DNA of 64,000 nt, from sequence record PQ471515.1; one strand, given 5' to 3'. A program made the position numbers and the translations under genes. Below, piece after piece: positions 2,460-20,960 of this stretch. Position 1 is the stretch's first letter. Every line of letters starts with the position of its first letter. Under the pieces are notes generated by a model. That model ran no database searches. It was not told where the DNA came from and saw only the letters and a list, made by a program, of their open reading frames with translations.

Positions 2460-2543
2460 TTTTGGGCGTAACTATGCACCCGGTGGGCTTGAGTCTTTCT
2501 CGACTTGATGGAACTATTATACAGTACTGAAAAAATAAAGCAA
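2460..2543 (-). ncRNA. promoter-driven ORF-less CCCA-NN-GGGTGC element
   Basis: TTGCTT-16-TATAAT on - strand; core GCCCACCGGGTGC 2476-2488. Confidence 0.55.
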
Positions 2544-2577
2544 TACCCTGGAAGCAAAAAAGTTTTAATTAATTTGC

Positions 2578-2660
2578 TTGCTATCCTGGGCCGGACTATG
2601 GTACTATATTTCAGTACTGAGAAAGTGCGTTTACCTGCTAGGGTGCGGGAGTGTATCCTT
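2578..2660 (+). ncRNA. degenerate CCCA-NN-GGGTGC element
   Basis: TTGCTA-18-TACTAT; TAGGGTGCGGGAGTGTATC shared with the 4571 copy. Confidence 0.4.
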
Positions 2661-2675
2661 TTTTTATATCTTGAA

Positions 2676-2759
2676 TTTTGGGCGTAATTCCGCACCCTCT
2701 GGGGTTTCCGCTTTCTCGCGTCTATGTAGTAATTATACGCTTTTTCAGGATCAAGTCAA
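2676..2759 (-). ncRNA. promoter-driven ORF-less CCCA-NN-GGGTGC element
   Basis: TTGACT-16-TATAAT on - strand; core CCCCAGAGGGTGC 2692-2704; TTACGCCCAAAATTC tail shared with the 2460 copy. Confidence 0.55.
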
Positions 2760-3118
2760 TACCTAAAAACAAAATAATTGAAAATAATTTAACGCGTTTA
2801 AACGGCCCGTAAAGCCCTGGAATGATTGGAATGGTGCAAATGTATAGCTTAGGTGTATTAATGCGTTAGAATGCGTCTGAGGCCGTTTTATGGGGTGTAG
2901 TAGTGATTTGGTTGATTCAGTACTGAATAATAGTACTACTATATAGAAAGATAGTTCCCCTGGATGGTTGCAGTACTGAATGATAGTTCCCCTATATAGA
3001 AAGAAAACTATTTTAAAAGTATTTGTAGAAAGTACTTGCAAACTATGTTTAAAGGCGTATAATGTTTTACATCGAGAGCGGGAACACTTCCTGCTACACA
3101 TTACGAGAGATTAAAACG

Positions 3119-3481
3119 ATGGCGACTCAAATCACTAAAATTATTGCTAACCTGGTTAACTTTCGCGACGAGATGAAAGATCTTCCGGCAGAAACGGTAA
3201 AAATTCACATTGCAGCTTATCGGGAACTTATTGCAATGTTACCTCTTAAGCGTGAACAATACGCCGCAACCGTGATGCTTGATGCGATGATCCATAAGAT
3301 GATCGCCAGTGATTTAACGATGGCTTATCAGTACATGGGCGAATTGTTCGCGGTGTATAGTAAACCAGTACCAGGAATGGAAAGTACAGAAGTATTACAC
3401 GGTTTAAATTTAAAACAAGATGCATGGGATAATATGCCTCGTTTCCTGGTATGGGCTGACAGTGGCAAAATTTACGAATAA
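3119..3481 (+). CDS. hypothetical early protein
   Basis: Own promoter, hairpin and RBS; start moved to MATQIT. Confidence 0.85.
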   Translation: MATQITKIIANLVNFRDEMKDLPAETVKIHIAAYRELIAMLPLKREQYAATVMLDAMIHKMIASDLTMAYQYMGELFAVYSKPVPGMESTEVLHGLNLKQDAWDNMPRFLVWADSGKIYE

Positions 3482-3574
3482 GTTTAATAAAGTACTTGCA
3501 AACTATGTTTAATGGCGTATAATGTTTTACATCAGGTGGGGAATAGTTCCCCACTATATAAGAGGATTAAAAAA

Positions 3575-3814
3575 ATGGCTAAATCAAAAATGTTCTTAGG
3601 TCACAAAAACAAAACTCATTGGAATGTAAGCCTTTGGATTAATAACGATGAGTCATTGTACCGGTTGGCTCAGGACTTTATTAACGATAGCACTAATCGC
3701 AATGATGCGGCCCGTCATATGATGTTATTTTTAGAACAGACTGGACAAGATAAAACACCGGACGGATTCAAATATAGCACTACTGCGATCCGTGCTGCAA
3801 TGGTTGGAATGTAA
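3575..3814 (+). CDS. conserved phage hypothetical (HWNVSLWINN), paralog of 5618
   Basis: Promoter and RBS; last ~60 nt nearly identical to the 5618 gene. Confidence 0.9.
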   Translation: MAKSKMFLGHKNKTHWNVSLWINNDESLYRLAQDFINDSTNRNDAARHMMLFLEQTGQDKTPDGFKYSTTAIRAAMVGM

Positions 3815-3899
3815 TAGAATTTATTTAAAGTACTATCATTTTTTGCGATAGTACTTTAAAATAGTGTTTTATTCATACACCAACGATAAGGGCAACAGC

Positions 3900-4166
3900 A
3901 TGAATATTAAGTATTTTGCGACGCGTGAACAAGCTCGGATCGCCGCACGCCAGGACGGGGTAACGTTTAAAGATATGGGCGTACAATCGGAACGTGGTAA
4001 ACGTTGGGCCATTGTAAAGCGTAGTACCGCCAGATCATTACAGTACTGGTTAGCGGCCTTAAAAAGTCCCGATAGTGTATCGCGACGAGTGGTAGAAATA
4101 AAGCTCGACCGAAAGGGCAACCGCGTGACCGTGTACCGTACTAAAAAGATTGCAGTACTTGAATAA
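3900..4166 (+). CDS. hypothetical, paralog of 16705
   Basis: FATRE.ARI.AR and DRKGNRVTVY motifs shared. Confidence 0.85.
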   Translation: MNIKYFATREQARIAARQDGVTFKDMGVQSERGKRWAIVKRSTARSLQYWLAALKSPDSVSRRVVEIKLDRKGNRVTVYRTKKIAVLE

Positions 4167-4253
4167 AAAGTACTTGCAAACTATGTTTAATGGCGTATAA
4201 TGTTTTACATCGAGAGCGGGAACTCTTCCCGCCTATAACCTGGAGTAATAAAA

Positions 4254-4484
4254 ATGACTAATATGTATATGACTGAAGTTAAAACCGTAAAAGATACTAC
4301 CACGAATAAAACTACTTACTTACAGCGGATCTGCGGTGTATGGCAACGTATCAGCAAATCAAAGTACTTTAAATTAACATCATATGCAAACCGTTCGGAT
4401 TCATTCAGTACTGAAATAAAAGGTAATAAAGTACACCAATACGGCACTTATTATTATTATAGCCTGGACGCGATTGCAGTATAA
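4254..4484 (+). CDS. hypothetical early protein
   Basis: Promoter, hairpin, GGAG RBS. Confidence 0.85.
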   Translation: MTNMYMTEVKTVKDTTTNKTTYLQRICGVWQRISKSKYFKLTSYANRSDSFSTEIKGNKVHQYGTYYYYSLDAIAV

Positions 4485-4517
4485 GCAGTTTTTGAAAAAT
4501 ATTTACAATTGCCAGTA

Positions 4518-4600
4518 TTGACTTATTTTGTCAGTACTGGCATAATGTATTCATTGGCAGATAAGCCGTAGCCCATAGGGTGCGGGAGTGTATCTATAGA
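4518..4600 (+). ncRNA. promoter-driven ORF-less CCCA-NN-GGGTGC element
   Basis: TTGACT-17-CATAAT; core GCCCATAGGGTGC 4571-4583. Confidence 0.55.
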
Positions 4601-4614
4601 AAAAGTAGTTTATT

Positions 4615-4690
4615 ACAGTTACAATTGTGCACCCGGTGGGTTAGCTGTTGTCATGGGGTATATTATGCCAGTACTTGATAATGCTGTCAA
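4615..4690 (-). ncRNA. promoter-driven ORF-less CCCA-NN-GGGTGC element, convergent with the previous copy
   Basis: TTGACA-17-CATAAT on - strand; core ACCCACCGGGTGC 4629-4641. Confidence 0.55.
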
Positions 4691-4771
4691 TACTTTTTTT
4701 TACTATTCAGTACTGAAAACTATTTTTAAAAAGTACTTGCAAACTATGTTTAAAGGCGTATAATGTTTTAC

Positions 4772-4846
4772 ATCAGGACGGGGAACGAAATAAGTAACTT
4801 CCCGTTAAGTAGCCCAGGAGTAAGGCACACGAAAAACTCCCCTGAT
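4772..4846 (+). ncRNA. three-way-junction leader/sRNA element, copy 1
   Basis: ATCAGG/CCTGAT closing stem; ACGGG/CCCGT and GGAGT/ACTCC stems; lies between two promoters. Confidence 0.5.
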
Positions 4847-4914
4847 AAAATAGTTTGACAAATGTTTTTAAAAGCGTATAATACTTACATCAACTACTGA
4901 ATGAGGGTTACAAA

Positions 4915-5526
4915 ATGAAAACTATCACTACTACTACTTATGTTATGGCTTTTTCTGAATTGAACGCAGAACAACAAACGTCAGCTATCGAACTGGTTCG
5001 GGAACGTGAAAAAAACTTAAACGATGATTATTTTTCTGAAAGTGAAATTGAATACTATAAAGAAACAGTACTACCGGAATATGGCATTAATGACGCTGAT
5101 TTACGTTTCAGTGGCTTTTGGTCCCAGGGTGACGGTGCATCAATCAGTACTGACCACGTTGACGCAGTGAAGTTTTTACGCAAGGTAAGAGCATTAACTA
5201 AGTATCGCTCAATCCGTCACCTTCTGAATGAAGATGATTTGGCGATGAGTGTAAAGCGTTCTCACTCCCACTACTCGCATGAGAATACTGTAAGCGGGTA
5301 CATTGAATCGGCTTACACTGATTTAACCGCAAAACAAGAAACGTTAGTTAATGAGCTTGAGGAACTACTCACTGAAACTATTCGTGAATTATCCCGCAAG
5401 TTGTACCGTGATTTAGAGAATGCATATGAGGATCAATTCACTACTGAAAACATTACGGCACTGATTGAGGGTAACGAATATCAATTCAATGTCATTGATG
5501 GTGTAGTAGAATCAATCGAATATTAA
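4915..5526 (+). CDS. acidic conserved phage hypothetical protein
   Basis: 203 aa ORF with promoter and GAGG RBS. Confidence 0.9.
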   Translation: MKTITTTTYVMAFSELNAEQQTSAIELVREREKNLNDDYFSESEIEYYKETVLPEYGINDADLRFSGFWSQGDGASISTDHVDAVKFLRKVRALTKYRSIRHLLNEDDLAMSVKRSHSHYSHENTVSGYIESAYTDLTAKQETLVNELEELLTETIRELSRKLYRDLENAYEDQFTTENITALIEGNEYQFNVIDGVVESIEY

Positions 5527-5617
5527 TTTAAAAAGTACTTGCAAACTAAGTTTAAAGGCGTATAATACTTTATATCGAGGCGGGGAGTGGTTCCCCGCTC
5601 AAACGAGGATTAAAAAA

Positions 5618-5857
5618 ATGGCTAGTACTAAAACTTACAACGGACACAAAAACAAAACTCATTGGAATGTTTCCTTATGGATTAATAACGGTGAGTCATT
5701 GTATCGGCTTGCTCAAAGTTGCATCGCACAAAGTAGAACTAAAGATATTGCAGCGGAATGTATGTACCGCAGATTAAAAGCCAACGGTACTACTACAACG
5801 CCGGACGGATTCAAGTATAGCACTACTGCGATCCGTGCTGCAATGGTTGGAATGTAA
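5618..5857 (+). CDS. conserved phage hypothetical (HWNVSLWINN), paralog of 3575
   Basis: Promoter, hairpin, RBS. Confidence 0.9.
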   Translation: MASTKTYNGHKNKTHWNVSLWINNGESLYRLAQSCIAQSRTKDIAAECMYRRLKANGTTTTPDGFKYSTTAIRAAMVGM

Positions 5858-5915
5858 TATTCAGTACTGTAACAATGGCGGGGAATGGTTCCCGCCTTTA
5901 TTGAGGGTTTATCTA

Positions 5916-6176
5916 ATGAGTAAAGTAATTAACTATACAGTACTAAGCAAGTCATTATCTATCAGTCATTGCACCGATGGTTATTGGCTATTTGATGAAA
6001 CGCGTGGAATGAATTTAGCTATGCGTGCAAAAACTGCTGAGGCGGCGTATCTTGAGGCACTGGAATACTACCAGGAACGTTTAACGGAAGTAGAAGAAGA
6101 TTATAAAAGCCTCAAAGCGAAAGTAGATCATTTCGTCGGTCAATTCATCGAGGAAGACGACGACAAACAATATTGA
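5916..6176 (+). CDS. hypothetical, acidic coiled-coil C-terminus
   Basis: GAGG RBS; start moved to MSKVIN. Confidence 0.8.
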   Translation: MSKVINYTVLSKSLSISHCTDGYWLFDETRGMNLAMRAKTAEAAYLEALEYYQERLTEVEEDYKSLKAKVDHFVGQFIEEDDDKQY

Positions 6177-6264
6177 AAAAAAGTACTTGCAATTAGTTTT
6201 CAGTACTGTATAATGGTTTACATCAAAGGGAGAAATGGTTCTCCCTGGTAATGAGGAAAATAAA

Positions 6265-6486
6265 ATGGCTAATATCACTACTCTTTCCCAACTGGAAGCA
6301 CTGGTTAAATCTATGCGGGAACATGCCGACAAAATCGGCGTACAAGATCCAGCCGTTTGCTTCTGCGACGAATTGAATGATGATACCCTGGTAATAGCAG
6401 AAGTCCAGGACGTTTCTAACTATTCCTCGCGTTACACTGGCGGCGTAGCAAATAAAGGTGACTTCTGTTTATACCTTACAAAATAA
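6265..6486 (+). CDS. hypothetical early protein
   Basis: Promoter, hairpin, GAGG RBS. Confidence 0.85.
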   Translation: MANITTLSQLEALVKSMREHADKIGVQDPAVCFCDELNDDTLVIAEVQDVSNYSSRYTGGVANKGDFCLYLTK

Positions 6487-6491
6487 CAACG

Positions 6492-6521
6492 CGGGGAGAT
6501 AATAACTCCCCGTTACTTTTT
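6492..6521 (+). terminator. intrinsic terminator
   Basis: CGGGGAG/CTCCCCG stem then TTACTTTTT. Confidence 0.55.
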
Positions 6522-6539
6522 CAGTACTGAATCATTTAA

Positions 6540-6621
6540 TAGACGGATCTCGGCACCCGGTGGGTTAGTGACTGTTTCGTCTTGATGTAGTAATTATGCC
6601 AGTACTGGATGCACTTGTCAA
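6540..6621 (-). ncRNA. promoter-driven ORF-less CCCA-NN-GGGTGC element
   Basis: TTGACA-17-CATAAT on - strand; core 6553-6565. Confidence 0.55.
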
Positions 6622-6729
6622 CAACTATTTTTCAAATACTTTTTATTAAAATACTTGCAATTAGTTTTTAAACGCGTATAATGTTTTGCATAGGGGGAGC
6701 GGTTCCCCTGGTAACTAAGGAATAAGAAA

Positions 6730-6966
6730 ATGGTCGAACAAATCAAATCAACGTCTTCGAATGTAACGGGAACGGTAGCACACTTTACTAGTGATGAATC
6801 GCGGGGCGTTCCCTATTGTGCTGTACATGTAAACACTGAGGGTAACTACTGGTTTACGGTTTACGGATCTTATTCATTTGGTCGCCCTGGACATCAAAAA
6901 ATTCTGGATAAAGTACAACCAACGGGTAAAAATATCACTGCCGAAATGTTTTATAAAAAATCATAA
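6730..6966 (+). CDS. hypothetical early protein
   Basis: Promoter, hairpin, AAGG RBS. Confidence 0.85.
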   Translation: MVEQIKSTSSNVTGTVAHFTSDESRGVPYCAVHVNTEGNYWFTVYGSYSFGRPGHQKILDKVQPTGKNITAEMFYKKS

Positions 6967-7050
6967 AGTACTTGCAATTAGTTTTTAGTACTGTATAATA
7001 TTTTACATCGCAAGGGGGAGCGGTTCCCCCTGGTAACTAAGGATAATCAA

Positions 7051-7350
7051 ATGAAAATTGCAATCATCGCCCTGGCTTTATCTGTTTCCTCTTTCGCTGT
7101 TAATGCGTCATTAGATGTAAGTAGTGAAAAATTCATTCAGTGCACTGTTGCAATGACCGATGAAAGAACTGGCGAGATTGTATTAAAGGATTTAGAGATC
7201 CAGCCGGAAGCATTTAAAAACGGCCCGTTCCATGAAGAAGACGAAAACGGTAGCACAACAATTTATTATGATGCCAGTACTAAACGCGGTTCGGTCACTG
7301 TTATGGATACTGAGAAAGTAACTCATACTGGCGTTATTAATTGCCGTTGA
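7051..7350 (+). CDS. hypothetical exported protein
   Basis: Signal-peptide-like MKIAIIALALSVSSFAVNA. Confidence 0.85.
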   Translation: MKIAIIALALSVSSFAVNASLDVSSEKFIQCTVAMTDERTGEIVLKDLEIQPEAFKNGPFHEEDENGSTTIYYDASTKRGSVTVMDTEKVTHTGVINCR

Positions 7351-7371
7351 TATATACTACGGGGTAACATC

Positions 7372-7602
7372 ATGACTAAGCGAATTGTTTTACTTAACGA
7401 AAGCAGTACTACACAACTACTTAACGCCGTGCATTATGATATTGAAACGAGCGTTAATCTTATCAGTACTGTAGTACTATTGGACACTGGAAAGGTCGCC
7501 AATGAAAAAGCTATTGCAGGTGTACTAACTGATCTCAAGCCTGGTAGCAGTACACCCATAACGTTAAATGATAAAGTGTTTAATGTTTTAATTACTGAAT
7601 AA
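7372..7602 (+). CDS. hypothetical protein
   Basis: ORF with RBS, followed by terminator. Confidence 0.8.
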   Translation: MTKRIVLLNESSTTQLLNAVHYDIETSVNLISTVVLLDTGKVANEKAIAGVLTDLKPGSSTPITLNDKVFNVLITE

Positions 7603-7608
7603 GTACAT

Positions 7609-7631
7609 AGCCCACCTGGTGGGCTTTTTTG
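7609..7631 (+). terminator. intrinsic terminator
   Basis: AGCCCAC/GTGGGCT stem and T tract. Confidence 0.85.
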
Positions 7632-7719
7632 TTTTTGTAGTATCGTAGTACTGAGATACTTTGAAAATAGTTTTAAAAAAGTAGTTGACATTACCGCAGA
7701 AAAGCGTAGAATGTATTAC

Positions 7720-7778
7720 ATCAAGACGGGGAGCACTAAGTAGACCGCCAGTAAGTCGAACGAAAAACTGGACACGTC
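7720..7778 (+). ncRNA. three-way-junction element, divergent copy in the 5' leader of the H-NS-like gene
   Basis: TAAGTAG linker and AAG-N4-ACGAAAA loop kept; stem is CCAGT/ACTGG. Confidence 0.4.
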
Positions 7779-7835
7779 GAGAAAACTTTGATACACTAAT
7801 AAACGTAAACTAAACTTTAATTGAGGATTTATAAA

Positions 7836-8318
7836 ATGGCTAATGTAAAATCATTCATCAAAGCACTGGTAGCAAATGAAACTAACGTCGCGGCAGAGAT
7901 CCTGGCTGAACTGGATAACGATACCATGAAAGCGGTACGCAATAATTTTAACATCGCGTACAGTACTGCGAAAGAACTACAAGCAAATAAAGCGGCAGAA
8001 ATTGAAGCGGCAAAGGCGGCCCGTGAAGCAGAACTACAAGCAACAATCGAAAGTATTCAGGCGGCAGTAGTTGGATTGGATCTGGAAGTAGTTACAGAGA
8101 TGGCACAAAAAGCCCTGGCGGTTAAGTATGGGGAAGACAAGCCAGAAGTAAAAGCCAAAAAATGGATTCAGGAACGCGTAGCGGTAGTACTGGACAACGG
8201 GGAAGAATATCTGATTCCGGTGCGTGGTAACTGCATTGCGGTAGTACTGGATGCGATTAACTCCAGTGGTATGACTCGCGAGGAATGGATCGAAGCTCAT
8301 CGCAAAGTTGAAGCATAA
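7836..8318 (+). CDS. H-NS-like protein with altered DNA-binding motif
   Basis: Coiled-coil N-term; C-term DNGEEYLIPVRGNCIAVVLDAINSSGMTREEWI aligns by eye with H-NS [33 protein letters not shown]. Confidence 0.55.
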   Translation: MANVKSFIKALVANETNVAAEILAELDNDTMKAVRNNFNIAYSTAKELQANKAAEIEAAKAAREAELQATIESIQAAVVGLDLEVVTEMAQKALAVKYGEDKPEVKAKKWIQERVAVVLDNGEEYLIPVRGNCIAVVLDAINSSGMTREEWIEAHRKVEA

Positions 8319-8339
8319 CAATTAAAGTACTGAATCACT

Positions 8340-8365
8340 AGCCCACTGTATAAGTGGGCTTTTTT
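8340..8365 (+). terminator. intrinsic terminator
   Basis: AGCCCACT/AGTGGGCT stem and T tract. Confidence 0.85.
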
Positions 8366-8602
8366 GTGTTTATCGTTTACCAGTCCACCAGCACCGCCTA
8401 GAATCGATTCTAACGCATTAAACTGATTATCTGATGCATTGCCCTAGCTGGTGGCGTTAAGGCTGTAAGAACGCGATTGAGTGCGTTTAAAGTATTTTGC
8501 AAAAAGTAATAAAAAGTACTTGCACGATTAAGAGATTAGCGTATAATGTTTTACATCGAGAGGGGGAAACGGTTCTCCTTCCAAATCAAAGGAATCAAAA
8601 CA

Positions 8603-8830
8603 ATGGCTATCGTAATCACTCGCGTATCTGGTACAGTTGGCAATGCGGCAGTAGTAGCGGTTATCACTAACAAGAAAGGTGCGGAACTACATTTTGCAAT
8701 GTATAACTGGTCAGTTGATGAGTTTGGTCAGTACGCTAGTGTAGAATACATTGAAACCTATCAAGTGCCGTCGATTAGTTTAACTGATTTGGGCGTTGAG
8801 CGTATCCTTTGCCTGGATGAATTAAATTAA
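8603..8830 (+). CDS. hypothetical early protein
   Basis: Promoter, hairpin, AGGA RBS. Confidence 0.85.
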   Translation: MAIVITRVSGTVGNAAVVAVITNKKGAELHFAMYNWSVDEFGQYASVEYIETYQVPSISLTDLGVERILCLDELN

Positions 8831-8916
8831 AAAAGTACTTGCAAAGTAAATCAGATAAAGTATAATACATTACATCAAGGGGAGAAATGGTTCTCCCTGA
8901 TAATGAGGAAACTAAT

Positions 8917-9060
8917 ATGAAAACTTGTCAATGTGGTAAAAAATCTATTACTGGTTTAAAGCGGGGCGTTGCTCTTTGTCAGTACCATTATAATTTACAA
9001 GTATGGGGTAAAGAATGGGCCGACCAGGTGGAAGCTGTAAAGAAAGCAAAAAGTAAGTAA
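8917..9060 (+). CDS. small putative zinc-finger protein (CxC...CxxH), 47 aa
   Basis: Own promoter, GAGG RBS; below ORF-track cutoff. Confidence 0.75.
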   Translation: MKTCQCGKKSITGLKRGVALCQYHYNLQVWGKEWADQVEAVKKAKSK

Positions 9061-9142
9061 AAATATTATCACAGTACTATTGACATAGTTTGATAGTACT
9101 GGCATAATAGATTTTATCAAGACAACTAAGAGGAAACAAAAA

Positions 9143-9355
9143 ATGGCTATCATTACTAAAATCAAAGTAAGTAAAACCCTGGTTAAACTTGAACAAGTGA
9201 AAGCAGGTTATAAAGTATCTTGGTGCGGTATGTATCGGATGTTCGCAGATATTGATGAAGCAATCAATTATTACAGCGACACGGTTAAAAACTTTGTTCG
9301 TGCTGATGTGGTTATGGCAGTGGCAACGCACAAAGCAGCGAAAGAAAGTAAGTAA
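9143..9355 (+). CDS. hypothetical early protein
   Basis: Class-II promoter and RBS. Confidence 0.85.
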   Translation: MAIITKIKVSKTLVKLEQVKAGYKVSWCGMYRMFADIDEAINYYSDTVKNFVRADVVMAVATHKAAKESK

Positions 9356-9444
9356 AAATATTATCACAGTACTATTGACATAGTTTGATAGTACTGGCAT
9401 AATAGATTTTATCAAGACAACATATTAATTTAAGGAATACAAAA

Positions 9445-13432: not shown

Positions 13433-13440
13433 ATAATATC

Positions 13441-14352: not shown

Positions 14353-14431
14353 TACTTGCATTTAGTTTTCAGTACTGTATAATAGTTTACATGAAGGGGA
14401 GAATAGTTCTCCCCACTACAAGGAAAGACAA

Positions 14432-14620
14432 ATGGAAAACTTATCAAGTATTTTAGTACAAGATGATTTCGGTAATCCTGGAAGTGCTATCATTGTTCGG
14501 GGTAATAAAGCAACGTTTGTTATTGCTGGTGGACCCTTACAGCGTAGCATTAAAAATAATGCTGTTACCATTAATAATGTACGCTATCGCTTAGATAAAG
14601 AATTAATTCATAAACTGTAA
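14432..14620 (+). CDS. hypothetical early protein
   Basis: Promoter, hairpin, RBS. Confidence 0.8.
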   Translation: MENLSSILVQDDFGNPGSAIIVRGNKATFVIAGGPLQRSIKNNAVTINNVRYRLDKELIHKL

Positions 14621-14706
14621 AAAAGTACTGGACAATAGATTATAGTACTGTATAATAAGTTACATGAAGGGGAGAAAATGATTCTCCCCACTAAGAGGAA
14701 AGAAAA

Positions 14707-14919
14707 ATGCAAGGTCAACTAATCGTTCGTAAATGGTCTGATACTAACGAAAAACCGTGGGATGTACAATACATCGCCCCCAATGGTGAATCCAGATATC
14801 AACCAGGTGTAACGCATAGTACTGAGCAATTCGCCGCCGCTCATCGTGAACGTCTGTTACAATCAATGCAGCAAGGTTTCGGTGAAAAATTCATTCAGGA
14901 TCATTGGCTGAAAGATTAA
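14707..14919 (+). CDS. hypothetical early protein
   Basis: Promoter, hairpin, GAGG RBS. Confidence 0.85.
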   Translation: MQGQLIVRKWSDTNEKPWDVQYIAPNGESRYQPGVTHSTEQFAAAHRERLLQSMQQGFGEKFIQDHWLKD

Positions 14920-15005
14920 AAAGTACTTGCACAGTACTGAATAAAGTGTATAATGTTTTATATCGAGAGGGGAATAGTTCCCCTCCTAACAAAAAGGAAA
15001 GTATA

Positions 15006-15179
15006 ATGATCCAAGTAGAATTATCAGTACTGAAAGATCTATTTTATCGGTTAGGTACTAATGGCGAGTATCCTAAAAGTGATACCGCAAAACTTTTTGT
15101 ATCACTCGACTTATGGCAACGCGAACAATTAGTAATGTCGTGGCGTAAAGGTAAAGCAGATCGCGAGGTGAAAGCATGA
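15006..15179 (+). CDS. small hypothetical protein
   Basis: Promoter, AAGG RBS; start at MIQVEL. Confidence 0.75.
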   Translation: MIQVELSVLKDLFYRLGTNGEYPKSDTAKLFVSLDLWQREQLVMSWRKGKADREVKA

Positions 15180-15325
15180 AAGAATTCTTATTTGAAGTAG
15201 TGTTTCAAGGTGTCGGTAGTAATCAACTGATTCGCTCAAGTGGTTACAATGTTAACCAGGCATGGAATAACATTAAACAAATGTACCCGAACGCTATCAC
15301 ATATCGCAACCCGAAAGAAGTTTAA
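15176..15325 (+). CDS. small hypothetical protein, 49 aa
   Basis: ATGA overlap, GAGG RBS. Confidence 0.7.
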   Translation: MKEFLFEVVFQGVGSNQLIRSSGYNVNQAWNNIKQMYPNAITYRNPKEV

Positions 15326-15343
15326 AAATAATTGAAAAAGGGA

Positions 15344-15420
15344 TTGACTCCGGTCAGTCCCTTTGCTATTATATACGCATAGAAACAAATTAGCCCACCG
15401 GGTGCATAAATGTATCTATT
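15344..15420 (+). ncRNA. promoter-driven ORF-less CCCA-NN-GGGTGC element
   Basis: TTGACT-17-TATTAT; core 15393-15405; Chi at 15425. Confidence 0.6.
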
Positions 15421-15507
15421 GTTTGCTGGTGGCTAGTACTATCAAGTACTGAAAACTATTTTTAAAAAGTACTTGCAAAGTATCACGATAAGCGTATAAT
15501 GTTTTAC

Positions 15508-15580
15508 ATCAGGACGGGGAACGAAACAAGTAACCCCGTTAAGTAGTCCAGGAGTAAGACATACGAAAAACTCCCCTGAT
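15508..15580 (+). ncRNA. three-way-junction element, copy 2
   Basis: Near-identical to 4772-4846. Confidence 0.5.
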
Positions 15581-15649
15581 AAAATAGTTTGACAATAGAA
15601 ATTAAACGAGTATAATACTTACATCAACCACTGATAAGGAAACATTAAA

Positions 15650-15925
15650 ATGCGGATTCTACTGACAGCTAACGAAATCGAACAAGTACTGACTACTAAC
15701 CTGGAAGACTGGAAACGTGAAGCAGATATCCAGGCGGTTCAATGGCTTAACGATAAGTTAACGCCGGATGACTTAAGCAAGATTGTAGATCCTCAATTCT
15801 ACGAAGATATCCACGACACCGCGTTAAGCGTCGAGGATGTACTTGATAAGCACTATATTGATACTGATTTACAGGTTTACGGTCGTAAAAACTTTATCAC
15901 TATTCACGACATTTACAATACTTAA
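15650..15925 (+). CDS. acidic hypothetical protein
   Basis: Promoter, AAGG RBS. Confidence 0.85.
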   Translation: MRILLTANEIEQVLTTNLEDWKREADIQAVQWLNDKLTPDDLSKIVDPQFYEDIHDTALSVEDVLDKHYIDTDLQVYGRKNFITIHDIYNT

Positions 15926-16013
15926 GTATTGACAAAGTATCTTAGTACTGTATAATAGTTTACATCAAGTGAGGGGAAACGGTTCCCCTCCTAACAAAGA
16001 GAGAGAAATAAAA

Positions 16014-16196
16014 ATGGCTAAGTGCACTATCTGCAAGAAAGAAATAGTATTAGTTCCAAGTGCCCGAGAACGTGCCGCTCGGTTTGGTGGCAAAGCGTCA
16101 GACTATACAAAAATGTTTACTGCCCATACAGCTTGCCAGGTAGCAAAACGTTCACAAGAAAGCGTAGAATTAATGCGTAAACTTTCCAAAAAATAA
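16014..16196 (+). CDS. small putative zinc-binding protein (CxxC...HxxC)
   Basis: Promoter and hairpin; start at MAKCTIC. Confidence 0.8.
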   Translation: MAKCTICKKEIVLVPSARERAARFGGKASDYTKMFTAHTACQVAKRSQESVELMRKLSKK

Positions 16197-16285
16197 GTAT
16201 TGACAAAGTATCTTAGTACTGTATAATAGTTTACATCAAGCGAGGGGAATGGTTCCCCTCCTAACAAAGAGAGAGAGAAATAAAA

Positions 16286-16609
16286 ATGGCTATGATCCTT
16301 ACCCAGAAAGTGGAACTGAAAATTGTAACCTCCTTTGACATTAAAGTTAATCGCTGGACTGATCGGAACGGCAATACTTACCACTCTTGCTACGTGTCAG
16401 CGTTAATTGGCGACCGCTGGGAAGACCTGGGACACGAAACCTTTACATACGGTTACGGTACACAAGGCGAATACACGGGCTTGGAGATCATTAAAGAAAC
16501 CGTTATAGGTTTCAACCCGAAAGAAAAAGTTATTCACCGCATCGAAAAAGAGATTAACAAAGAAATAACAGTTCGCTACTACGATGTAAAACGTAAGAAA
16601 GACATGTAA
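16286..16609 (+). CDS. hypothetical, paralog of 9445
   Basis: RWTDRNGNTYHSC motif. Confidence 0.9.
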   Translation: MAMILTQKVELKIVTSFDIKVNRWTDRNGNTYHSCYVSALIGDRWEDLGHETFTYGYGTQGEYTGLEIIKETVIGFNPKEKVIHRIEKEINKEITVRYYDVKRKKDM

Positions 16610-16704
16610 TAGAATCCATTTAAAGTACTATTTGACATTGCCCAGATAGTACTTTATAATAGACGCTAACTTGTAGTACTATCTCAACTAATAGGATGTA
16701 TACC

Positions 16705-17100
16705 ATGATTACTAAATTCTACGCTACCCGTGAAGCTGCCCGTATTGTTGCACGCGAGGAAGGAGCAGCATTTAAAGACATGGGCAAAGATGCACCGAAA
16801 GGTCAACGCTGGGCCGTACAGTTCAAAGAAATCTCTGATATTGTGAATTCACCTGAGCCAGTACTGACAGCAGCAGAACTAAAACGAGCGGATATGCTGG
16901 CGGCAATACTTGACGCACAAGATGAGTTTATCGCTGGTTCTGATATCAAAGTACAGGCAAACCATACCGCTTGGACTCACGCGGATCACCTGGCAAACCT
17001 TAAGCGTCCAAGTGAACTGATTCGCAACCAGAAAGAGATCCGACACGACCGTAAGGGTAATCGTGTAACAGTATACAGTAAACGCCGCCAGGTTATCTAA
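16705..17100 (+). CDS. hypothetical, paralog of 3900
   Basis: FYATREAARIVAR and DRKGNRVTVY. Confidence 0.85.
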   Translation: MITKFYATREAARIVAREEGAAFKDMGKDAPKGQRWAVQFKEISDIVNSPEPVLTAAELKRADMLAAILDAQDEFIAGSDIKVQANHTAWTHADHLANLKRPSELIRNQKEIRHDRKGNRVTVYSKRRQVI

Positions 17101-17122
17101 TAACTTGCAGTACTAACAACAC

Positions 17123-17147
17123 GGCGGGTTCAGTTCCCGCCTTTTTT
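17123..17147 (+). terminator. intrinsic terminator
   Basis: GGCGGG/CCCGCC stem and T6. Confidence 0.8.
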
Positions 17148-17161
17148 ATAGGACAAACAAA

Positions 17162-17416
17162 ATGATTAAGGTTCAACTATATAAAGATAACATCTTACGG
17201 GTACACTATAAAGCACCGAAGAGAATCATCACAAAGGCCGTACAGCTTGCTAATGAGTTTATTAATGGTAACCTATTACCAAGGAAGTTAAGCAACGGGA
17301 AACTGCGTGTAATCGATGTGGACACTAACAACAGAATAGTAATTGAGAACACAGGAAAGATAAACCTATATGAACACCAACAATATAATAAGAAAATAAA
17401 ACTAATATCACGTTGA
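17162..17416 (+). CDS. basic hypothetical protein
   Basis: AGGA RBS. Confidence 0.75.
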   Translation: MIKVQLYKDNILRVHYKAPKRIITKAVQLANEFINGNLLPRKLSNGKLRVIDVDTNNRIVIENTGKINLYEHQQYNKKIKLISR

Positions 17417-17469
17417 CAGTACTCAAATGTTTTAGTACTATGTACATATACCAACACGGGAGAAACAAA

Positions 17470-17688
17470 ATGAAATTATCTAAAATCGAAAAGAAAACTA
17501 TTGATGAAGCAGTTAAGCACGGTTATACCTTTCGTAATGATTCACATTTTACCAATTTTCAACAAGGGTATCGTACTATTAAAAAACTTATTGACAAAGG
17601 TTTATTAGTTGAAGTCAATAACGGCAATGGCATTGAGTATCAACCAACACAGGACGCATTTTATTTTAAGAAATATAATATTATCTAA
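17470..17688 (+). CDS. hypothetical, possibly small winged-helix-like
   Basis: Promoter shared in sequence with the next gene; start at MKLSKI. Confidence 0.75.
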   Translation: MKLSKIEKKTIDEAVKHGYTFRNDSHFTNFQQGYRTIKKLIDKGLLVEVNNGNGIEYQPTQDAFYFKKYNII

Positions 17689-17745
17689 TTGACAGTACTC
17701 AAATGTTTTAGTACTATATGTACATACCAACACGGGGAAAACAAA

Positions 17746-17988
17746 ATGATTACTTTAGAAAAACGTATCAAAGAAACTACATCGCTGGTGGAATTGTTAA
17801 CAGTACTGAAATGTAAAACAACACCATTCAGCACGCCGGACTTTATTAATATGGTTGATGTTAATGGTCGCTATCGTATCACGGTCGAACAAGGAGCGGC
17901 GAAAGTATTCAGTACTAAAAACACTAAGGAAGTGATCCACGCCGTTAATGTTAAAAAAGTAGTTGCAATTGATAGTAAAGTACTGTAA
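17746..17988 (+). CDS. hypothetical early protein
   Basis: Duplicated promoter/leader; start at MITLEK. Confidence 0.8.
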   Translation: MITLEKRIKETTSLVELLTVLKCKTTPFSTPDFINMVDVNGRYRITVEQGAAKVFSTKNTKEVIHAVNVKKVVAIDSKVL

Positions 17989-18019
17989 TATAGTTTCATT
18001 AACTCAAGGAGAACATGCA

Positions 18020-18604
18020 ATGCGTAATTATACTAAATTCATCCGTACCCTGTCAGAAATGGAAACTAACAAAGAGATCCTTTCAGCTTGTCGGTTAGCT
18101 GGACTGGAGATCATCGGGGCGGGATCTTCCCGTATAGTTTTCGCTTTAAATGATCGGTTAGTGATTAAGGTCGCCAATTGTGATGCGGGTGTAGAACAAA
18201 ATGAAACTGAATGTAAGGTATGGAATTTTTTAGACTATGACCGCCCTCAATTGAAACAGTACTTTGCTAAAGTGCATATGCATTTAAGCGATCCTGATAA
18301 TATGTTTATCGTTATGGATCGGTTGAGTACTGCAAGCAAAGGCAGTGTAAAGCACGTTAACGCGTGCAACGAATTAAAGTACAATATTAAACGTAATGCA
18401 ATTGAACGCCAGCACCGCTTTGCTGATGCACTACAACACGTTGATGATACACTGTCAACACTAACGATAAGAGATATCAGAAAACAGAATATCGGCCAGG
18501 ATCGCAACGGCCTTATTAAAGTACTTGATTACGGTTTAACCCGCAATATCTGGAATCAGTACTATAAAAAGCGGGATGTAAAAGCCGTAACTATAACACG
18601 ATAA
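18020..18604 (+). CDS. protein kinase-like (Ser/Thr kinase fold)
   Basis: GAGSSRIVF loop, VIK, alphaC Glu, DIRKQN catalytic loop, DYG. Confidence 0.85.
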   Translation: MRNYTKFIRTLSEMETNKEILSACRLAGLEIIGAGSSRIVFALNDRLVIKVANCDAGVEQNETECKVWNFLDYDRPQLKQYFAKVHMHLSDPDNMFIVMDRLSTASKGSVKHVNACNELKYNIKRNAIERQHRFADALQHVDDTLSTLTIRDIRKQNIGQDRNGLIKVLDYGLTRNIWNQYYKKRDVKAVTITR

Positions 18605-18622
18605 AAAAGATTAAAAAAGGGA

Positions 18623-18706
18623 TTGACTTCGGTCAGTCCCTTTTCTATTATATATTCATTGAGAGATAGCTCACTGACCCACAGGGTGCATAAATGTATC
18701 TATTAT
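18623..18706 (+). ncRNA. promoter-driven ORF-less CCCA-NN-GGGTGC element
   Basis: TTGACT-17-TATTAT; core 18677-18689. Confidence 0.6.
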
Positions 18707-18827
18707 ATAAGTATTCAGTACTGAAAACTATTTTTAAAAAAGTACTTGCATTGTACTTAGAATCAAGTATAATGTTTTATATCGAGAGGGGGAAATGGTT
18801 CTCCCTCAAAGAATAAGGAATAAAATC

Positions 18828-19049
18828 ATGACTACAATGACTTGCATTTACGCTTCCAATCTTCTGAATGATGCGGCCTTTAATGTTGATTCAGAATATC
18901 AATGTTATCGGGATGAAAATAAAAAAGTTTTTGTAGTTGATAATAATGGTTTCCATATTGAATTACAATCCGGTTTCACTGGTGTTGATGGTAAATCAGT
19001 GTGGGGCGTACAGGATGATAAAGGCACATATCATTTTAAACGTAATTAA
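18828..19049 (+). CDS. hypothetical early protein
   Basis: Promoter, hairpin, RBS. Confidence 0.8.
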   Translation: MTTMTCIYASNLLNDAAFNVDSEYQCYRDENKKVFVVDNNGFHIELQSGFTGVDGKSVWGVQDDKGTYHFKRN

Positions 19050-19135
19050 GTATTGACAAAGTATATCAGTACTGTATAATAGTTTACATCAAGGGGAGAA
19101 TAGTTCTCCCCACACCAATAAAAGGAAACAAAATT

Positions 19136-19408
19136 ATGTCCAGCTACTCCGCTACTATGATCATTAAAGATATGAACGGTAATCCTACTTCTGCTGGTGG
19201 ATCATTTGGAAACATTAATTTAGATGGTCGGTTATCCATGCAATCAGCCATCGATGCAGCGAAAGAAGTTTTTAAGAATGAATGTACTGTAAGTAAGCTG
19301 GATTATATGGGATTCGCTATCGAGAAAACTAATCGTTTTGTGAACTACAAAAATCCACTGATGATCGATACTAACCTGAAAGCAAACGAAGTGGAATACT
19401 TATTATGA
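19136..19408 (+). CDS. hypothetical early protein
   Basis: Promoter, hairpin, RBS. Confidence 0.85.
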   Translation: MSSYSATMIIKDMNGNPTSAGGSFGNINLDGRLSMQSAIDAAKEVFKNECTVSKLDYMGFAIEKTNRFVNYKNPLMIDTNLKANEVEYLL

Positions 19409-19596
19409 CAGTTGAAGAAGTTAAAAAAGTACTGGCAGTACTACGATATCATAATCATTGCAAGGTGAAGAATGATCCTGATTATGTTGATTCATCCCTG
19501 GAGGAAGACACCTTAAACGCGATAAGCCATATGCAAACATTAGCAAAGCGTATGACCGAAAAGAATAGGCCGGACTATATCGGAAATAAAATTTAA
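19405..19596 (+). CDS. hypothetical protein
   Basis: ATGA overlap. Confidence 0.75.
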   Translation: MTVEEVKKVLAVLRYHNHCKVKNDPDYVDSSLEEDTLNAISHMQTLAKRMTEKNRPDYIGNKI

Positions 19597-19683
19597 AAAG
19601 TACTTGCATTGTAGTTAGATTAACGTATAATGTTTTATATCGAGAGGGGGAAATGGTTTCCCCTCAAGTCCAGGAGATACACC

Positions 19684-19947
19684 ATGAACACTATCGAAAT
19701 CACTATCAATGCACACGTATACGACAACGTAGTACTGCAAACTACTATGACCGCTAATGATACCAGTACTTTGCGGAATACTGTTATTAGTGCCGTATGT
19801 GCTGCAATCGGTGATGTTGCCCTGGAAAATGCAGAACATATCAACAACGGTTTCACTATGTGCAAACGTGATAACGCAAAACATATCATCGTGGAAGGTT
19901 ACGGCGGTGTAGAATTTAATGTTTATATGAAAAAAGTACTTGCATAA
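19684..19947 (+). CDS. hypothetical early protein
   Basis: Promoter, AGGAG RBS; start at MNTIEI. Confidence 0.85.
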   Translation: MNTIEITINAHVYDNVVLQTTMTANDTSTLRNTVISAVCAAIGDVALENAEHINNGFTMCKRDNAKHIIVEGYGGVEFNVYMKKVLA

Positions 19948-20014
19948 TAACTAAAACAAAGTATAATGTTTTGCATAGGGGGAGATATCCTCCCCCACTA
20001 AAAGGAGTAATAAA

Positions 20015-20239
20015 ATGGCTAACTTTGATGAACTGATGCGGGAAGTAGCTAACCTGGCAGAAGAGAAGAAATCATTCGATTCTATCTATAACACCGCTCA
20101 CCGTGATTCAGTACTGGCATGTAACCAGGATCAAAAAGATGAACTAATCGCCACATATCATGAAGCATGGAAGTACTACCGACAATGGGAGAAAGAAGAA
20201 AGCGAGTCTACCATCGAAGGTATCAATAATCTAATCTAA
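20015..20239 (+). CDS. acidic hypothetical protein
   Basis: Promoter, hairpin, AGGAG RBS. Confidence 0.85.
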   Translation: MANFDELMREVANLAEEKKSFDSIYNTAHRDSVLACNQDQKDELIATYHEAWKYYRQWEKEESESTIEGINNLI

Positions 20240-20313
20240 AGTTTTATTTCAGTACTATTGACATAGCTTGATAGTACTGATGTAATAACTTTACTAACTA
20301 AAGGGGAAACATA

Positions 20314-20571
20314 ATGGAGCAGTTCACACAATATCGGGTAAATCCTCAAGCTATGGCCTACGTAGAAGACCATAAAACGTTACCAGTACTGCAACCAGTT
20401 AAAGGCCGTATCTATCGTGGCCTTGCCTGGGATACGGCCCAGGATGGATATAAAACCGTCGCCGTGGGGATGTATTGCGGGAATGGTGAATGGTTTGATC
20501 CTAGCAATCCGATTGCACTTGACAGTACTGAAAAAATGAAATGGGCCGACTACATCGAAGATATTTCATAA
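20314..20571 (+). CDS. hypothetical early protein
   Basis: Promoter and RBS. Confidence 0.85.
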   Translation: MEQFTQYRVNPQAMAYVEDHKTLPVLQPVKGRIYRGLAWDTAQDGYKTVAVGMYCGNGEWFDPSNPIALDSTEKMKWADYIEDIS

Positions 20572-20661
20572 AAACTATTTGACAGTACTAACCAGTAATG
20601 TATAATGTTTTACATAGAGCGGGGGAATAGTTCTCCCGCCAATAGTTTGGAGTTAAACATT

Positions 20662-20862
20662 ATGTCTATCGCTATCGCCCTGGTTGAAGTACTGAAAGAA
20701 GCTAAAGCCAACCTTATCGATGTACAGATTAAGGAATTGCAAAACGGCTTAATCGGCTGTACTTGTACCGCTGGTGGAGCGGCAGACTATCGAGAACACG
20801 AATCACTCGAATCACTGGTTCGGTATCTTACCATGATCGTTGATGATTGGAGAATCATCTAA
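20662..20862 (+). CDS. hypothetical early protein
   Basis: Promoter, GGAG RBS; start at MSIAIA. Confidence 0.8.
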   Translation: MSIAIALVEVLKEAKANLIDVQIKELQNGLIGCTCTAGGAADYREHESLESLVRYLTMIVDDWRII

Positions 20863-20885
20863 CAAAAAAAAGAATAAAAAAGGGA

Positions 20886-20960
20886 TTGACTCCGGTCAGT
20901 CCCTTTGCTATTATATACGCATAGACAAAAACTAGCCCACAGGGTGCATAGGTGTATCTA
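20886..20960 (+). ncRNA. promoter-driven ORF-less CCCA-NN-GGGTGC element
   Basis: TTGACT-17-TATTAT; core 20935-20947; Chi at 20994. Confidence 0.6.

Follow-up and report, generated by a model that had tools for sequence, protein, structure and literature searches.

The early region of Escherichia phage Turkey3, a Rak2-like jumbo phage, carries eleven copies of a real multicopy, promoter-coupled family. The family constitutes a conserved 'start module' in the immediate-early regions of such phages: a strong host sigma-70 promoter is joined to an RNA element of about 50 nt at the 5' end of the transcript. The DNA analyzed here (the window) comprises positions 1–64000 of the Turkey3 sequence. 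The core pattern of the module has nine exact matches in this 64-kb window against 0.01 expected, and 0 of 100 shuffled sequences reached nine. Together with 2634(+) and 2692(-) these are the eleven cores listed by the first-pass annotation. A covariance model, built on 43 copies from four phages and run with the filters off, returned the identical list of 11 matches (E-values 1e-11 to 1e-6) and none besides, all confined to 2454–20969. The copy 2634(+), which had been called degenerate, is hence a real member, as is 2692(-) in the covariance model.

Promoter coupling

A sigma-70-type promoter (score 8–12 of 12) with A/T runs upstream precedes all 11 window copies, which bears out the earlier claim of a dedicated promoter ahead of each core. 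The core begins 20–27 nt past the -10 hexamer, and the distance from the hexamer end to GGGTG is 27–35 nt. Among 89 copies from 17 sources, almost all promoters score at least 9 of 12 and the corresponding distance is 31–35 nt, or 27–28 nt in a short-leader subclass. This near-fixed spacing is kept although the promoters differ in type. The distance to the start site falls into two modes, which makes a mechanism strictly dependent on distance unlikely. The early region holds ≈50 sigma-70 promoters within 18 kb, and 22 gene promoters share a promoter-plus-5'-hairpin design from which the core is absent.

Placement and gene context of the copies

Six of the eleven copies are orphan or antisense units without a gene downstream, and one third of the window copies are antisense. 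Copy 1 (2454–2543, minus strand; -35 at 2538–2543, -10 at 2516–2521, module 2454–2513, core 2476–2488, 48.7 bits) is directed leftwards, towards a CDS-free region in which iterons are found at 2203, 2243, and 2283. Copy 2 (2578–2668, plus strand; promoter 2578–2607, module 2609–2668, degenerate core 2634–2646, 39.1 bits) and copy 3 (2670–2759, minus strand; promoter 2732–2759, module 2670–2729, degenerate core 2692–2704, 44.3 bits) are convergent partners with 58 bp between their cores. In copy 2 the H3 helix described below is terminator-like, with a run of seven T behind it. A second convergent pair is formed by copy 4 (4518–4605, plus strand; promoter 4518–4546, module 4548–4605, core 4571–4583, 48.5 bits) and copy 5 (4607–4690, minus strand; promoter 4662–4690, module 4607–4666, core 4629–4641, 40.8 bits), the latter belonging to the short-leader subclass without H1 and lying antisense to the gene module upstream. 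Both orientations and both convergent pairs had been noted in the first-pass annotation and were found again here. Copy 6 (6480–6621, minus strand; promoter 6593–6621, module 6531–6590, core 6553–6565, 51.7 bits) is back to back with the promoter of gene 6730, shares a bidirectional terminator at 6491–6513, and is predicted to yield a stand-alone RNA of ≈105 nt.

The other five copies, all on the plus strand, are located 120–260 nt upstream of genes with a second promoter intervening. Copy 7 (11679–11774; promoter 11686–11714, module 11715–11774, core 11740–11752, 60.3 bits) leads the gene module beginning at 11887 and has its -35 within the terminator hairpin of the upstream unit (11679–11706). 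Copy 8 (13350–13440; promoter 13350–13378, module 13381–13440, core 13406–13418, 49.8 bits) belongs to a 317-bp cassette (13347–13664) that is absent from phage G17. The promoter is likewise overlapped by a terminator hairpin in copy 9 (15337–15427; hairpin 15337–15364, promoter 15344–15372, module 15368–15427, core 15393–15405, 53.9 bits), a member of the short-leader subclass, in copy 10 (18615–18711; hairpin 18615–18644, promoter 18623–18651, module 18652–18711, core 18677–18689, 58.2 bits) and in copy 11 (20879–20969; hairpin 20879–20906, promoter 20886–20914, module 20910–20969, core 20935–20947, 57.1 bits), the last copy, which is close to where the terminal repeat is inferred to end on the right. 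The -35 is thus placed within the 12–13 bp terminator-like hairpin of the preceding unit in four plus-strand copies; the core hairpin itself, with 4 bp only, does not resemble a terminator. An annotated 40-aa CDS (18694–18816) that starts within the module of copy 10 is probably no real gene.

Single minus-strand copies are found directly after bidirectional terminators, and a terminator 35–40 nt past the module defines predicted sRNA-like units of ≈95–105 nt in the window and in RaK2, CBB, fHe-Yen9-04, and Serratia BF. A promoter and terminator of their own for a discrete short RNA were identified for 6553(-), for 2634(+) and for the single minus-strand copies of RaK2, CBB, fHe-Yen9-04, and BF, but no such terminator was found for the five gene-leading plus-strand copies. 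The original description of the elements as lacking an RBS or ORF therefore holds for the ≈60-nt module but not for its surroundings, as these five copies are upstream of genes. Similarly, a class of 'ORF-less' sRNA genes agrees with the six orphan or antisense copies, but ≈60% of the copies lead gene modules, several plus-strand copies in relatives are the sole promoter ahead of the next CDS, and a terminator for a ≈100-nt RNA is seen mainly in the minus-strand singles.

Genes lacking a promoter come immediately after the hairpin or terminator-like sites at 5877 and 17123, which makes read-through necessary in the early region. No N-, Q-, or NusG-like protein was recognized among ten neighboring proteins, whose matches were limited to a GNAT domain, a weak kinase hit and uncharacterized phage families.

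Folding of the leader RNA

Three helices could be identified in the leader. H1 is a hairpin of 3–5 bp whose stem sequence varies between copies, while a purine-rich loop of mostly 6–8 nt is kept. It was found in 67 of 77 distinct copies with 33 different stem sequences, and ten copies lack any H1 hairpin. Changes on both sides of the stem occur in 128 cells compared to 53 ± 5 in shuffles, and 71% vs. 38% of these are paired. Among 68 loops, sizes of 6–8 nt are seen in 41, 12, and 7 copies, 4 nt in four, 5 nt in one and 9 nt in three. H1 was also considered as a boxB (5-bp stem with a purine-rich pentaloop, the target of an arginine-rich N peptide), which was rejected given these loop sizes and the hairpin-free copies.

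A linker of 3–4 nt separates H1 from H2, the near-invariant core hairpin, whose 4-bp stem and 3-nt loop are as originally described. In H2 98% of the cells are paired, and there are two independent C:G to U:A double changes. The 13-bp core also contains a CCC/GGG dyad, limited to three base pairs. The continuation (A/G)TGTATCTA reported after the core was seen again, and an AT-rich stretch follows the core (columns 62–67). The alternative helix, H3, is formed by GGGUG with a pyrimidine-purine-pyrimidine-pyrimidine-pyrimidine stretch 7–8 nt downstream. As H2 and H3 compete for one GGGUG they are mutually exclusive. The first five pairs of H3 are paired in 92–100%, and its 3' columns show 78 transitions and 15 transversions, whereas the six columns that follow have 44 and 142. 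Only about half of the copies have a GGA triplet in the H3 loop.

Counted on the transcribed sense, G-U outnumbers A-C by 43 to 1 in H2 and by 229 to 0 in H3. With G-U pairs confined to the transcribed sense, folding is assigned to the sense strand. The substitution patterns show that the family is under the constraints of a folded single strand of the transcribed sense, and the earlier idea of a transcription-exposed hairpin or small RNA fits both the covariation of the H1 stem and the G-U pairing in H2 and H3. The two folds are nearly equal in stability, with mean energies of -3.7 kcal/mol for H2 and -2.9 kcal/mol for H3, and H3 is the better fold in 42 of 86 copies; single copies fold no better than shuffled sequence (z of -0.3 and +0.5). 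A U-tract follows H3 in only ≈10% of the copies, and H3 is therefore not a general terminator.

Conservation and database searches

About a dozen copies per genome are present in six genomes from five genera, and the carrier phages infect Escherichia, Klebsiella, Cronobacter, Pectobacterium, and Erwinia/Yersinia/Serratia. In phages with mapped termini the unit lies within the ≈20-kb terminal repeat together with immediate-early genes. GAP32 and CBB have 13 and 12 copies, respectively, which are collinear. The core is nearly unchanged over the five genera while the flanks diverge freely, indicating selection on the core itself rather than shared descent. Orphan and antisense copies, ≈one third of all copies, are kept in every genus, and the convergent pairs are also conserved. 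Similarity between the window and its relatives breaks at promoters and modules (positions ≈3018, 4709, 15634, 18834, and 20960).

The first-pass annotation recognized no known family, and Rfam 15 likewise gave no match in the window at gathering scores, and none over any copy within 1000–22000 at E-values up to 5. A blastn search with the 51-nt module against 5,426 E. coli genomes gave no match at E-values up to 10, although the short query weakens this search. An exact 20-base pattern had one match, a non-member, in 185,579 bacterial and archaeal species. With no counterpart in either set, the module is no copy of a host RNA, and the suggestion that it mimics CRISPR or type III antitoxin RNA found no support. 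The unit was not found described in the literature searched.

Comparison with known systems

The HK022 put RNA acts in cis on the polymerase and a phage protein is unnecessary; it is ≈70 nt long with two longer stems. Like put, the module is a nascent RNA with two stem-loops just past early promoters, but its stems are of 3–5 bp and the second can switch partner, so the likeness is one of logic only. Compared by description, the module also resembles lambda-type nut sites, which consist of the linear boxA and the boxB hairpin. In either case the signal resides in early RNA close to the promoter and has a small hairpin of free stem sequence, a kept purine-rich loop and an adjoining conserved element; both are located upstream of terminators needing read-through, and both have copies in both directions. 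Unlike nut, the module has its two parts in reversed order, the conserved part is itself a hairpin, ≈12 copies are present rather than 2, many have no genes downstream, and no N-like protein was found among the ten neighbors. RAT/BglG-type and other attenuators share with the module a leader with mutually exclusive helices using one strand in common and, for ≈10% of the copies, a U-tract behind the 3' helix. As most copies lack this tract, the module is not generally a terminator switch. CsrB-type sponges, pseudo-antitoxin RNAs and RNA anti-CRISPRs are likewise non-coding with many copies of a small hairpin, and strong expression is predicted for the module. Its hairpins are, however, on separate transcripts with their own promoters, non-tandem and without host similarity.

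The closest known kind is the PeSL (promoter-early stem-loop) cassette of T4-type phages (Arbiol et al., 2010, PMC2839356). Both combine a strong sigma-70-like promoter after an AT-rich stretch with a stem-loop that overlaps the -35 or is placed past the -10, and are repeated many times across a hyperplastic early region rich in small orphan genes. PeSLs mark insertions, deletions or replacements between close relatives; among the modules, the cassette with copy 8 is missing from G17 and several similarity breaks fall at modules, but the copies of GAP32 and CBB are collinear and stable. By definition a PeSL includes the gene it expresses, and its stem-loop is a terminator, often of the G-run/C-run type and variable in sequence, that can end or attenuate upstream transcription (PMC2839356). 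In contrast, the Turkey3 leader has a near-invariant 13-nt core and a second, covarying hairpin, and no window copy is directly ahead of an expressed gene: over half of the window copies drive none, and the other five are separated from theirs by a promoter. One third are antisense, and convergent pairs are conserved. The true PeSL look-alikes are the ordinary gene promoters of the early region, which lack the core.

Proposed function

As a first choice, tentatively held, we propose that the nascent RNA controls early elongation and termination in cis. The promoters presumably fire, and the RNA would fold in the cell into H1 and either H2 or H3. The working part would be this RNA as it emerges, or the non-template DNA strand of identical sequence, acting in cis on the RNA polymerase that just made it. 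The element may be a sequence-specific handle for a putative conserved partner, which could be an early protein of the phage or the host polymerase together with elongation factors, and the H2/H3 exchange might govern pausing, termination or read-through. In this way the early region would be punctuated by the modules: plus-strand copies would restart and condition transcription right past the terminator of the preceding unit, and minus-strand copies and convergent pairs would send polymerases so conditioned into the ends of units upstream. For the six copies without a downstream gene a cis effect could only be on antisense or colliding transcription, so that the cis reading has to be stretched ad hoc to include them.

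The conservation of such copies in every genus would suit a trans-acting, abundant immediate-early RNA that titrates or recruits a conserved host RNA-binding protein or defense component as a decoy or sponge, which we rank second and consider rather unlikely. Here the terminal repeat would double a dozen or so strong promoters, and the cell would be filled with RNAs that all show the core hairpin and purine-rich loop, no matter whether a short RNA or an mRNA 5' end carries the module. The terminated minus-strand singles, the absence of an ORF or RBS in the module and a core near-invariant among phages of different hosts all agree with this, but the plus-strand copies have no defined 3' end and are often the sole promoter of a gene, and the kept positions and stable copy number in GAP32 and CBB exceed the needs of a pure dosage role. 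Furthermore, nothing alike was found in the E. coli genomes or bacterial species searched, and the loops match no known binding motif consistently, as the GGA triplet illustrates.

Less probable still, the RNA fold could be incidental to PeSL-type regulatory or recombination cassettes, acting as promoter/terminator linkers homogenized by duplication and recombination, or to a DNA operator, with the 13-bp core as the double-stranded site of an early repressor blocking promoters at ≈+20 to +33. The density and common design of promoters in this hyperplastic region, the terminator hairpins over the -35 of four copies, a PeSL subclass (PMC2839356), the similarity breaks, the cassette missing from G17 and the CCC/GGG dyad are all in line with this. 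Yet the core is stable while its flanks are free, H1 covaries, and H2 and H3 vary within the limits of G-U pairing on the sense strand only, a pattern not expected of a duplex DNA site. The dyad also stops at three base pairs, and the gene promoters of the region lack the core, which is thus no general shut-off site. Only a few origins are known in T4, and a dozen copies within 20 kb are far above this number, so the transcription-primed origins of the first-pass annotation fit poorly. In such T4-type R-loop origins the transcript, hybridized in the AT-rich stretch past the core, would prime the leading strand. The order of promoter, G-containing core and AT-rich stretch, the copies in both orientations and the adjoining CDS-free region with its iterons would accord with this, as would the distant relationship of Rak2-like phages to T4 (PMC5259590). 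Convergent pairs would, however, aim primers at each other, many copies are mRNA leaders, and an R-loop needs neither H1 covariation nor an H2/H3 exchange, which makes origins highly improbable.

With regard to cis-acting control, a put-like action without a protein would account for conservation across hosts with one common polymerase. It is possible, if doubtful, that the module forms the RNA component of an early control system not described so far. It would then be a two-state 5' handle that either loads a conserved factor onto host RNA polymerase, nut- or put-like but without any relative by sequence, or traps a host protein, RNA-binding or defense-related, in the first minutes of infection, and its ≈12 copies in both orientations may time and bound early transcription.

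The early region of the source phage

The window is identical to positions 1–64000 of Escherichia phage Turkey3 (PQ471515.1), a 361-kb Rak2-like jumbo myovirus near the Asteriusvirus phages 121Q, PBECO4, G17 and fEgEco12. The promoter and leader RNA module is found in the left part of this genome, where a CDS-free stretch (1091–3062) is followed by ≈55 small genes that all lie on the + strand, nearly all of them annotated without a function. The early region holds ≈50 strong sigma-70-type promoters. Pfam and PHROG scans of 10 neighbouring proteins gave no RNA-binding or antitermination candidate among the ten; what they returned was a GNAT domain, a weak match to a kinase and phage families without a name. 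A scan of the window for tRNA and tmRNA genes found none.

Twenty-two gene promoters (repeat family D1; window 3023–21514) share one cassette design, consisting from 5' to 3' of an A-run or A-rich stretch, AGTAC with the -35, the -10, a GC-rich 5' hairpin, an RBS and the gene. The same layout has been described for T4-type hyperplastic regions and promoter/stem-loop (PeSL) cassettes (PMC2839356), and these D1 promoters are the true PeSL look-alikes of Turkey3. Long, tightly packed arrays of paralogous small genes (repeat families D7–D15 and D20) with few sigma-70 promoters occupy 22000–50000 and begin just where the modules cease and the inferred terminal repeat ends. Megablast matches to 2000–22000 include 13 Campylobacter phage records as well as some Phapecoctavirus, Justusliebigvirus, Acinetobacter and Erwinia phage records.

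Module copies and their surroundings

The first-pass annotation had placed eleven ORF-less elements with a common core behind dedicated promoters, at 2476(−), 2634(+), 2692(−), 4571(+), 4629(−), 6553(−), 11740(+), 13406(+), 15393(+), 18677(+) and 20935(+). The core pattern has nine exact matches at these coordinates and strands (0.01 expected), and the two copies taken as degenerate are genuine members, as both are matched by a covariance model. This model, R1, was built from alignment A2 (43 copies from four phages); over the whole window with filters off it gave 11 matches (39–60 bits) and no others. A promoter does precede each copy, with 27–35 nt between the end of the -10 and GGGTG. The lack of an ORF holds for six of the eleven copies and fails for the five gene-leading (+) copies. 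These (11740, 13406, 15393, 18677 and 20935) lie 120–260 nt ahead of a gene, from which a gene-type promoter separates them, and for all except 13406 the -35 is found inside a 12–13-bp terminator-like hairpin closing the preceding unit. In the phages RaK2, GAP32 and CBB several (+) copies are the only promoter before the next CDS, which makes the module a genuine mRNA leader as well.

Copy 6553(−) is followed after ≈40 nt by a bidirectional terminator that it has in common with gene 6235–6486, giving a predicted RNA of ≈105 nt. Single (−) copies in RaK2, CBB, fHe-Yen9-04 and BF have the same terminator arrangement. Transcripts of paired copies run into the complement of the partner, where a long hairpin is possible (z −3.7 to −4.1). 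Copy 2476(−) is directed into the CDS-free region.

Genes 5916–6176 and 17162–17416 begin ≈20 nt past hairpin or terminator-like sites at 5877 and 17123 with no promoter in between, and must be expressed by read-through. The annotated 40-aa CDS XMR00951.1 (18694–18816) starts inside the tenth copy and spans the next promoter; its frame ends within a few codons in paralogous and orthologous module copies, and it is probably not a gene. A 317-bp cassette (13347–13664), made up of a promoter, the eighth module copy, a second promoter and a 48-aa ORF, is present in 121Q and missing from G17, with a 12-bp overlap at the junction.

Predicted fold of the leader RNA

The predicted transcription start is the A of a conserved CAT, 6–8 nt past the -10. 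The 5' hairpin, H1, begins 4–6 nt further on with a stem of 3–5 bp, and is present in 67 of 77 distinct copies with 33 different stem sequences. Its loops are purine-rich, GCGAAA (14), GAGAAA (12), AGATAA (7) and AGAACAA (7) being the commonest. The H1 hairpin score was observed in 86%, against 30% of shuffled trials reaching the same score. When 86 distinct copies were aligned to the model, H1 was paired in 71% (38% in shuffles) and changes on both sides of the stem were seen in 128 cells (53 ± 5 in shuffles); this alignment is fitted to the model, yet the effect is also seen in the ungapped alignment A2. A short-leader subclass of 10 copies, including 4629(−), 15393(+) and 20935(+), is without H1 and retains an A-rich stretch.

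The core hairpin, H2, follows after a linker of 3–4 nt and has four pairs (98% paired) and a loop of 3 or 4 nt. At the first pair, 41 copies have A-U and 40 have G-U, and two independent double changes from C:G to U:A were found. An alternative helix, H3, can form from the same GGGUG(C) and a partner stretch 7–8 nt downstream. The five partner columns vary almost only by transitions that preserve pairing (92–100% paired), with 78 transitions and 15 transversions compared to 44 and 142 in the next six columns. H2 (−3.7 kcal/mol) and H3 (−2.9 kcal/mol) are about equally stable, H3 being the better one in 42 of 86 copies, and in 2634(+) a U-run comes directly after H3. The ratio of G-U pairs to A-C "pairs" is 43 to 1 in H2 and, in H3, 229 to 0. 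If these helices form, they do so on the transcribed sense, in the RNA or the non-template strand. Conservation fades ≈50 nt past the start. The signs that an RNA fold is under selection in the module are clear.

Other candidate features were rejected. Pairing of the H1 loop with the 3' strand of H3 as a pseudoknot fits only copies with one loop type, and an outer helix around H2, predicted in single copies, is not common to the copies. Neither a CsrA-type GGA loop nor an SD-like GGAG can define the module, each being present in about half of the copies. In about half of the copies a start codon can be read in the three columns that follow the H3 loop. A small conserved ORF from within the module was nevertheless rejected, as the frames stop after 3–40 codons at differing places and are not properly spaced to a ribosome-binding site.

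Conservation and distribution

The module is kept in RaK2 (Klebsiella), GAP32 (Cronobacter), CBB (Pectobacterium) and the coliphages 121Q and G17, and is also found in Yersinia phage fHe-Yen9-04, Serratia phage BF, Erwinia phage pEa_SNUABM_50 and several uncultured jumbo contigs. Where the region was fully read there are 11 copies in the window, 10 in RaK2, 13 in GAP32, 12 in CBB and 12 in the Erwinia phage, while the incomplete G17 locus has 9. In this way the module marks, in each genome, roughly a dozen sites where immediate-early transcription is predicted to start. Roughly one third of the copies are oriented against the genes. The number of convergent pairs ranges from one to three per genome, with two in the window and three in both GAP32 and CBB, and the left end always has at least one; paired cores are usually 56–58 bp apart. 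The copies of GAP32 and CBB are collinear, one for one.

In CBB the annotated terminal repeat is 22,456 bp long and contains all copies (982–20934); the 12.5 kb that follow have none. A terminal repeat of 20,993 bp has been mapped and confirmed by digestion in the close relative fEgEco12 (PMC13070987), and alignment offsets suggest that the window copies (2454–20969) lie within the equivalent stretch. The pattern search of IMG/VR returned 94 DNA stretches, mostly chance single matches in unrelated contigs, from which the model picked the true members; exact-pattern matches in complete IMG/VR genomes are all within this same early region. Rfam gave no match over any copy at gathering or permissive thresholds, and blastn of the module against 5,426 E. 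coli genomes gave none either. A pattern scan of 185,579 bacterial and archaeal species found no member, the single match being due to chance, and the motif is not described in the papers searched.

Comparison with known systems

The PeSL cassette is the closest described kind. It shares the promoter and the genomic setting with the module and, in part, the stem-loop and an association with insertions and deletions, as in the cassette missing from G17. However, the defining link of a PeSL to the gene that it drives is not seen for the module, and PeSLs have no invariant leader core. The nut and put elements and leader switches, compared by description, are alike in logic, but none of their tested defining features was found in the module. 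We therefore do not place it in a named family and file it as a promoter-proximal RNA module of the phage early region that no named family claims.

Other repeated elements

The palindrome CAGTACTG occurs 62 times in the whole window (0.87 expected) and AGTACT 264 times (21 expected). AGTACT is in 12–17-fold excess in every Rak2-like genus sampled (loci including L002 of RaK2, L099 of G17, L003, L004, L025 and L015). Its sites lie in promoters (before the -35 or into the -10), terminator stems and coding regions, and also 25–35 nt past many modules. No description of this enrichment was found in the papers searched.

The 2-kb CDS-free stretch (1091–3062) at the left edge of the early genes contains 13 TCAGTACTGA palindromes (spanning 1296–2978), a 12-mer repeated with 40-bp spacing at 2203, 2243 and 2283, and other short repeats. 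The sign of the GC skew switches near 2 kb, and equivalent gaps exist in RaK2 (L002 9601–11115) and G17 (L099 8121–10015). The stretch looks like an origin, terminus or control region. A strong leftward promoter at 2390–2418 (−; 11/12), just left of the first module copy, is directed into it; its leader is ORF-less and contains two GC hairpins. A second ORF-less, promoter-driven family is found at 4737–4850, 7685–7800 and 15473–15585 (all +). Its leaders of ≈100 nt have two GC-rich hairpins and a common ACGAAAAACT stretch, and two of the three copies come directly after a module of the main family. G17 has this family too, and none of the three copies has an Rfam match.

Possible modes of action

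The fold and its position speak for an element that is single-stranded, of the sense strand and always at the very start of a transcript. It may be recognised by a factor that is conserved either in Enterobacterales or in this group of phages. We rank first, as a tentative reading, that the module would act in cis on the polymerase making the RNA, by control of pausing, termination or read-through. This ranking is based on the coupling to promoters of differing types, the placement directly after terminators, the read-through needed from 5877 into 5916 and from 17123 into 17162, the two-state H2/H3 design and the positional stability of the copies. A U is conserved in 94% of copies, with G-G ≈10–11 nt before it, a G next in 59%, and H2 just upstream. 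From what is generally known of elemental pause signals, this pattern together with H2 would fit a hairpin-stabilised pause ≈35–40 nt past the start, which we regard as a lead only. The cis reading is weakest for the orphan and antisense copies.

These orphan copies would be well explained by a decoy or sponge RNA acting in trans, a reading that accounts less well for the gene-leading copies and that we hold to be doubtful. It is unlikely that the module is a PeSL-like relic or a duplex DNA operator, as this would leave both the H1 covariation and the strand-specific G-U pattern unexplained. R-loop origins fit poorly with the copy number, the convergent pairs and the use as leader, and seem very improbable.

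Rak2-like phages (Asteriusvirus, Alcyoneusvirus, Mimasvirus, Eneladusvirus) are collected as candidates for therapy and biocontrol. To our knowledge their early programme is unstudied, and no transcriptome of the group was found in the papers searched. The module, confined to the long terminal repeat where phage termini are mapped, gives a concrete and testable handle on this programme, and recognising it should prevent spurious small CDS calls such as 18694–18816. If control of the polymerase is the true function, the module would add a new case to the RNA-based control of transcription in phages; as a decoy, it would represent a new phage–host interaction. Under either reading it deserves a covariance-model entry in the RNA family catalogues.
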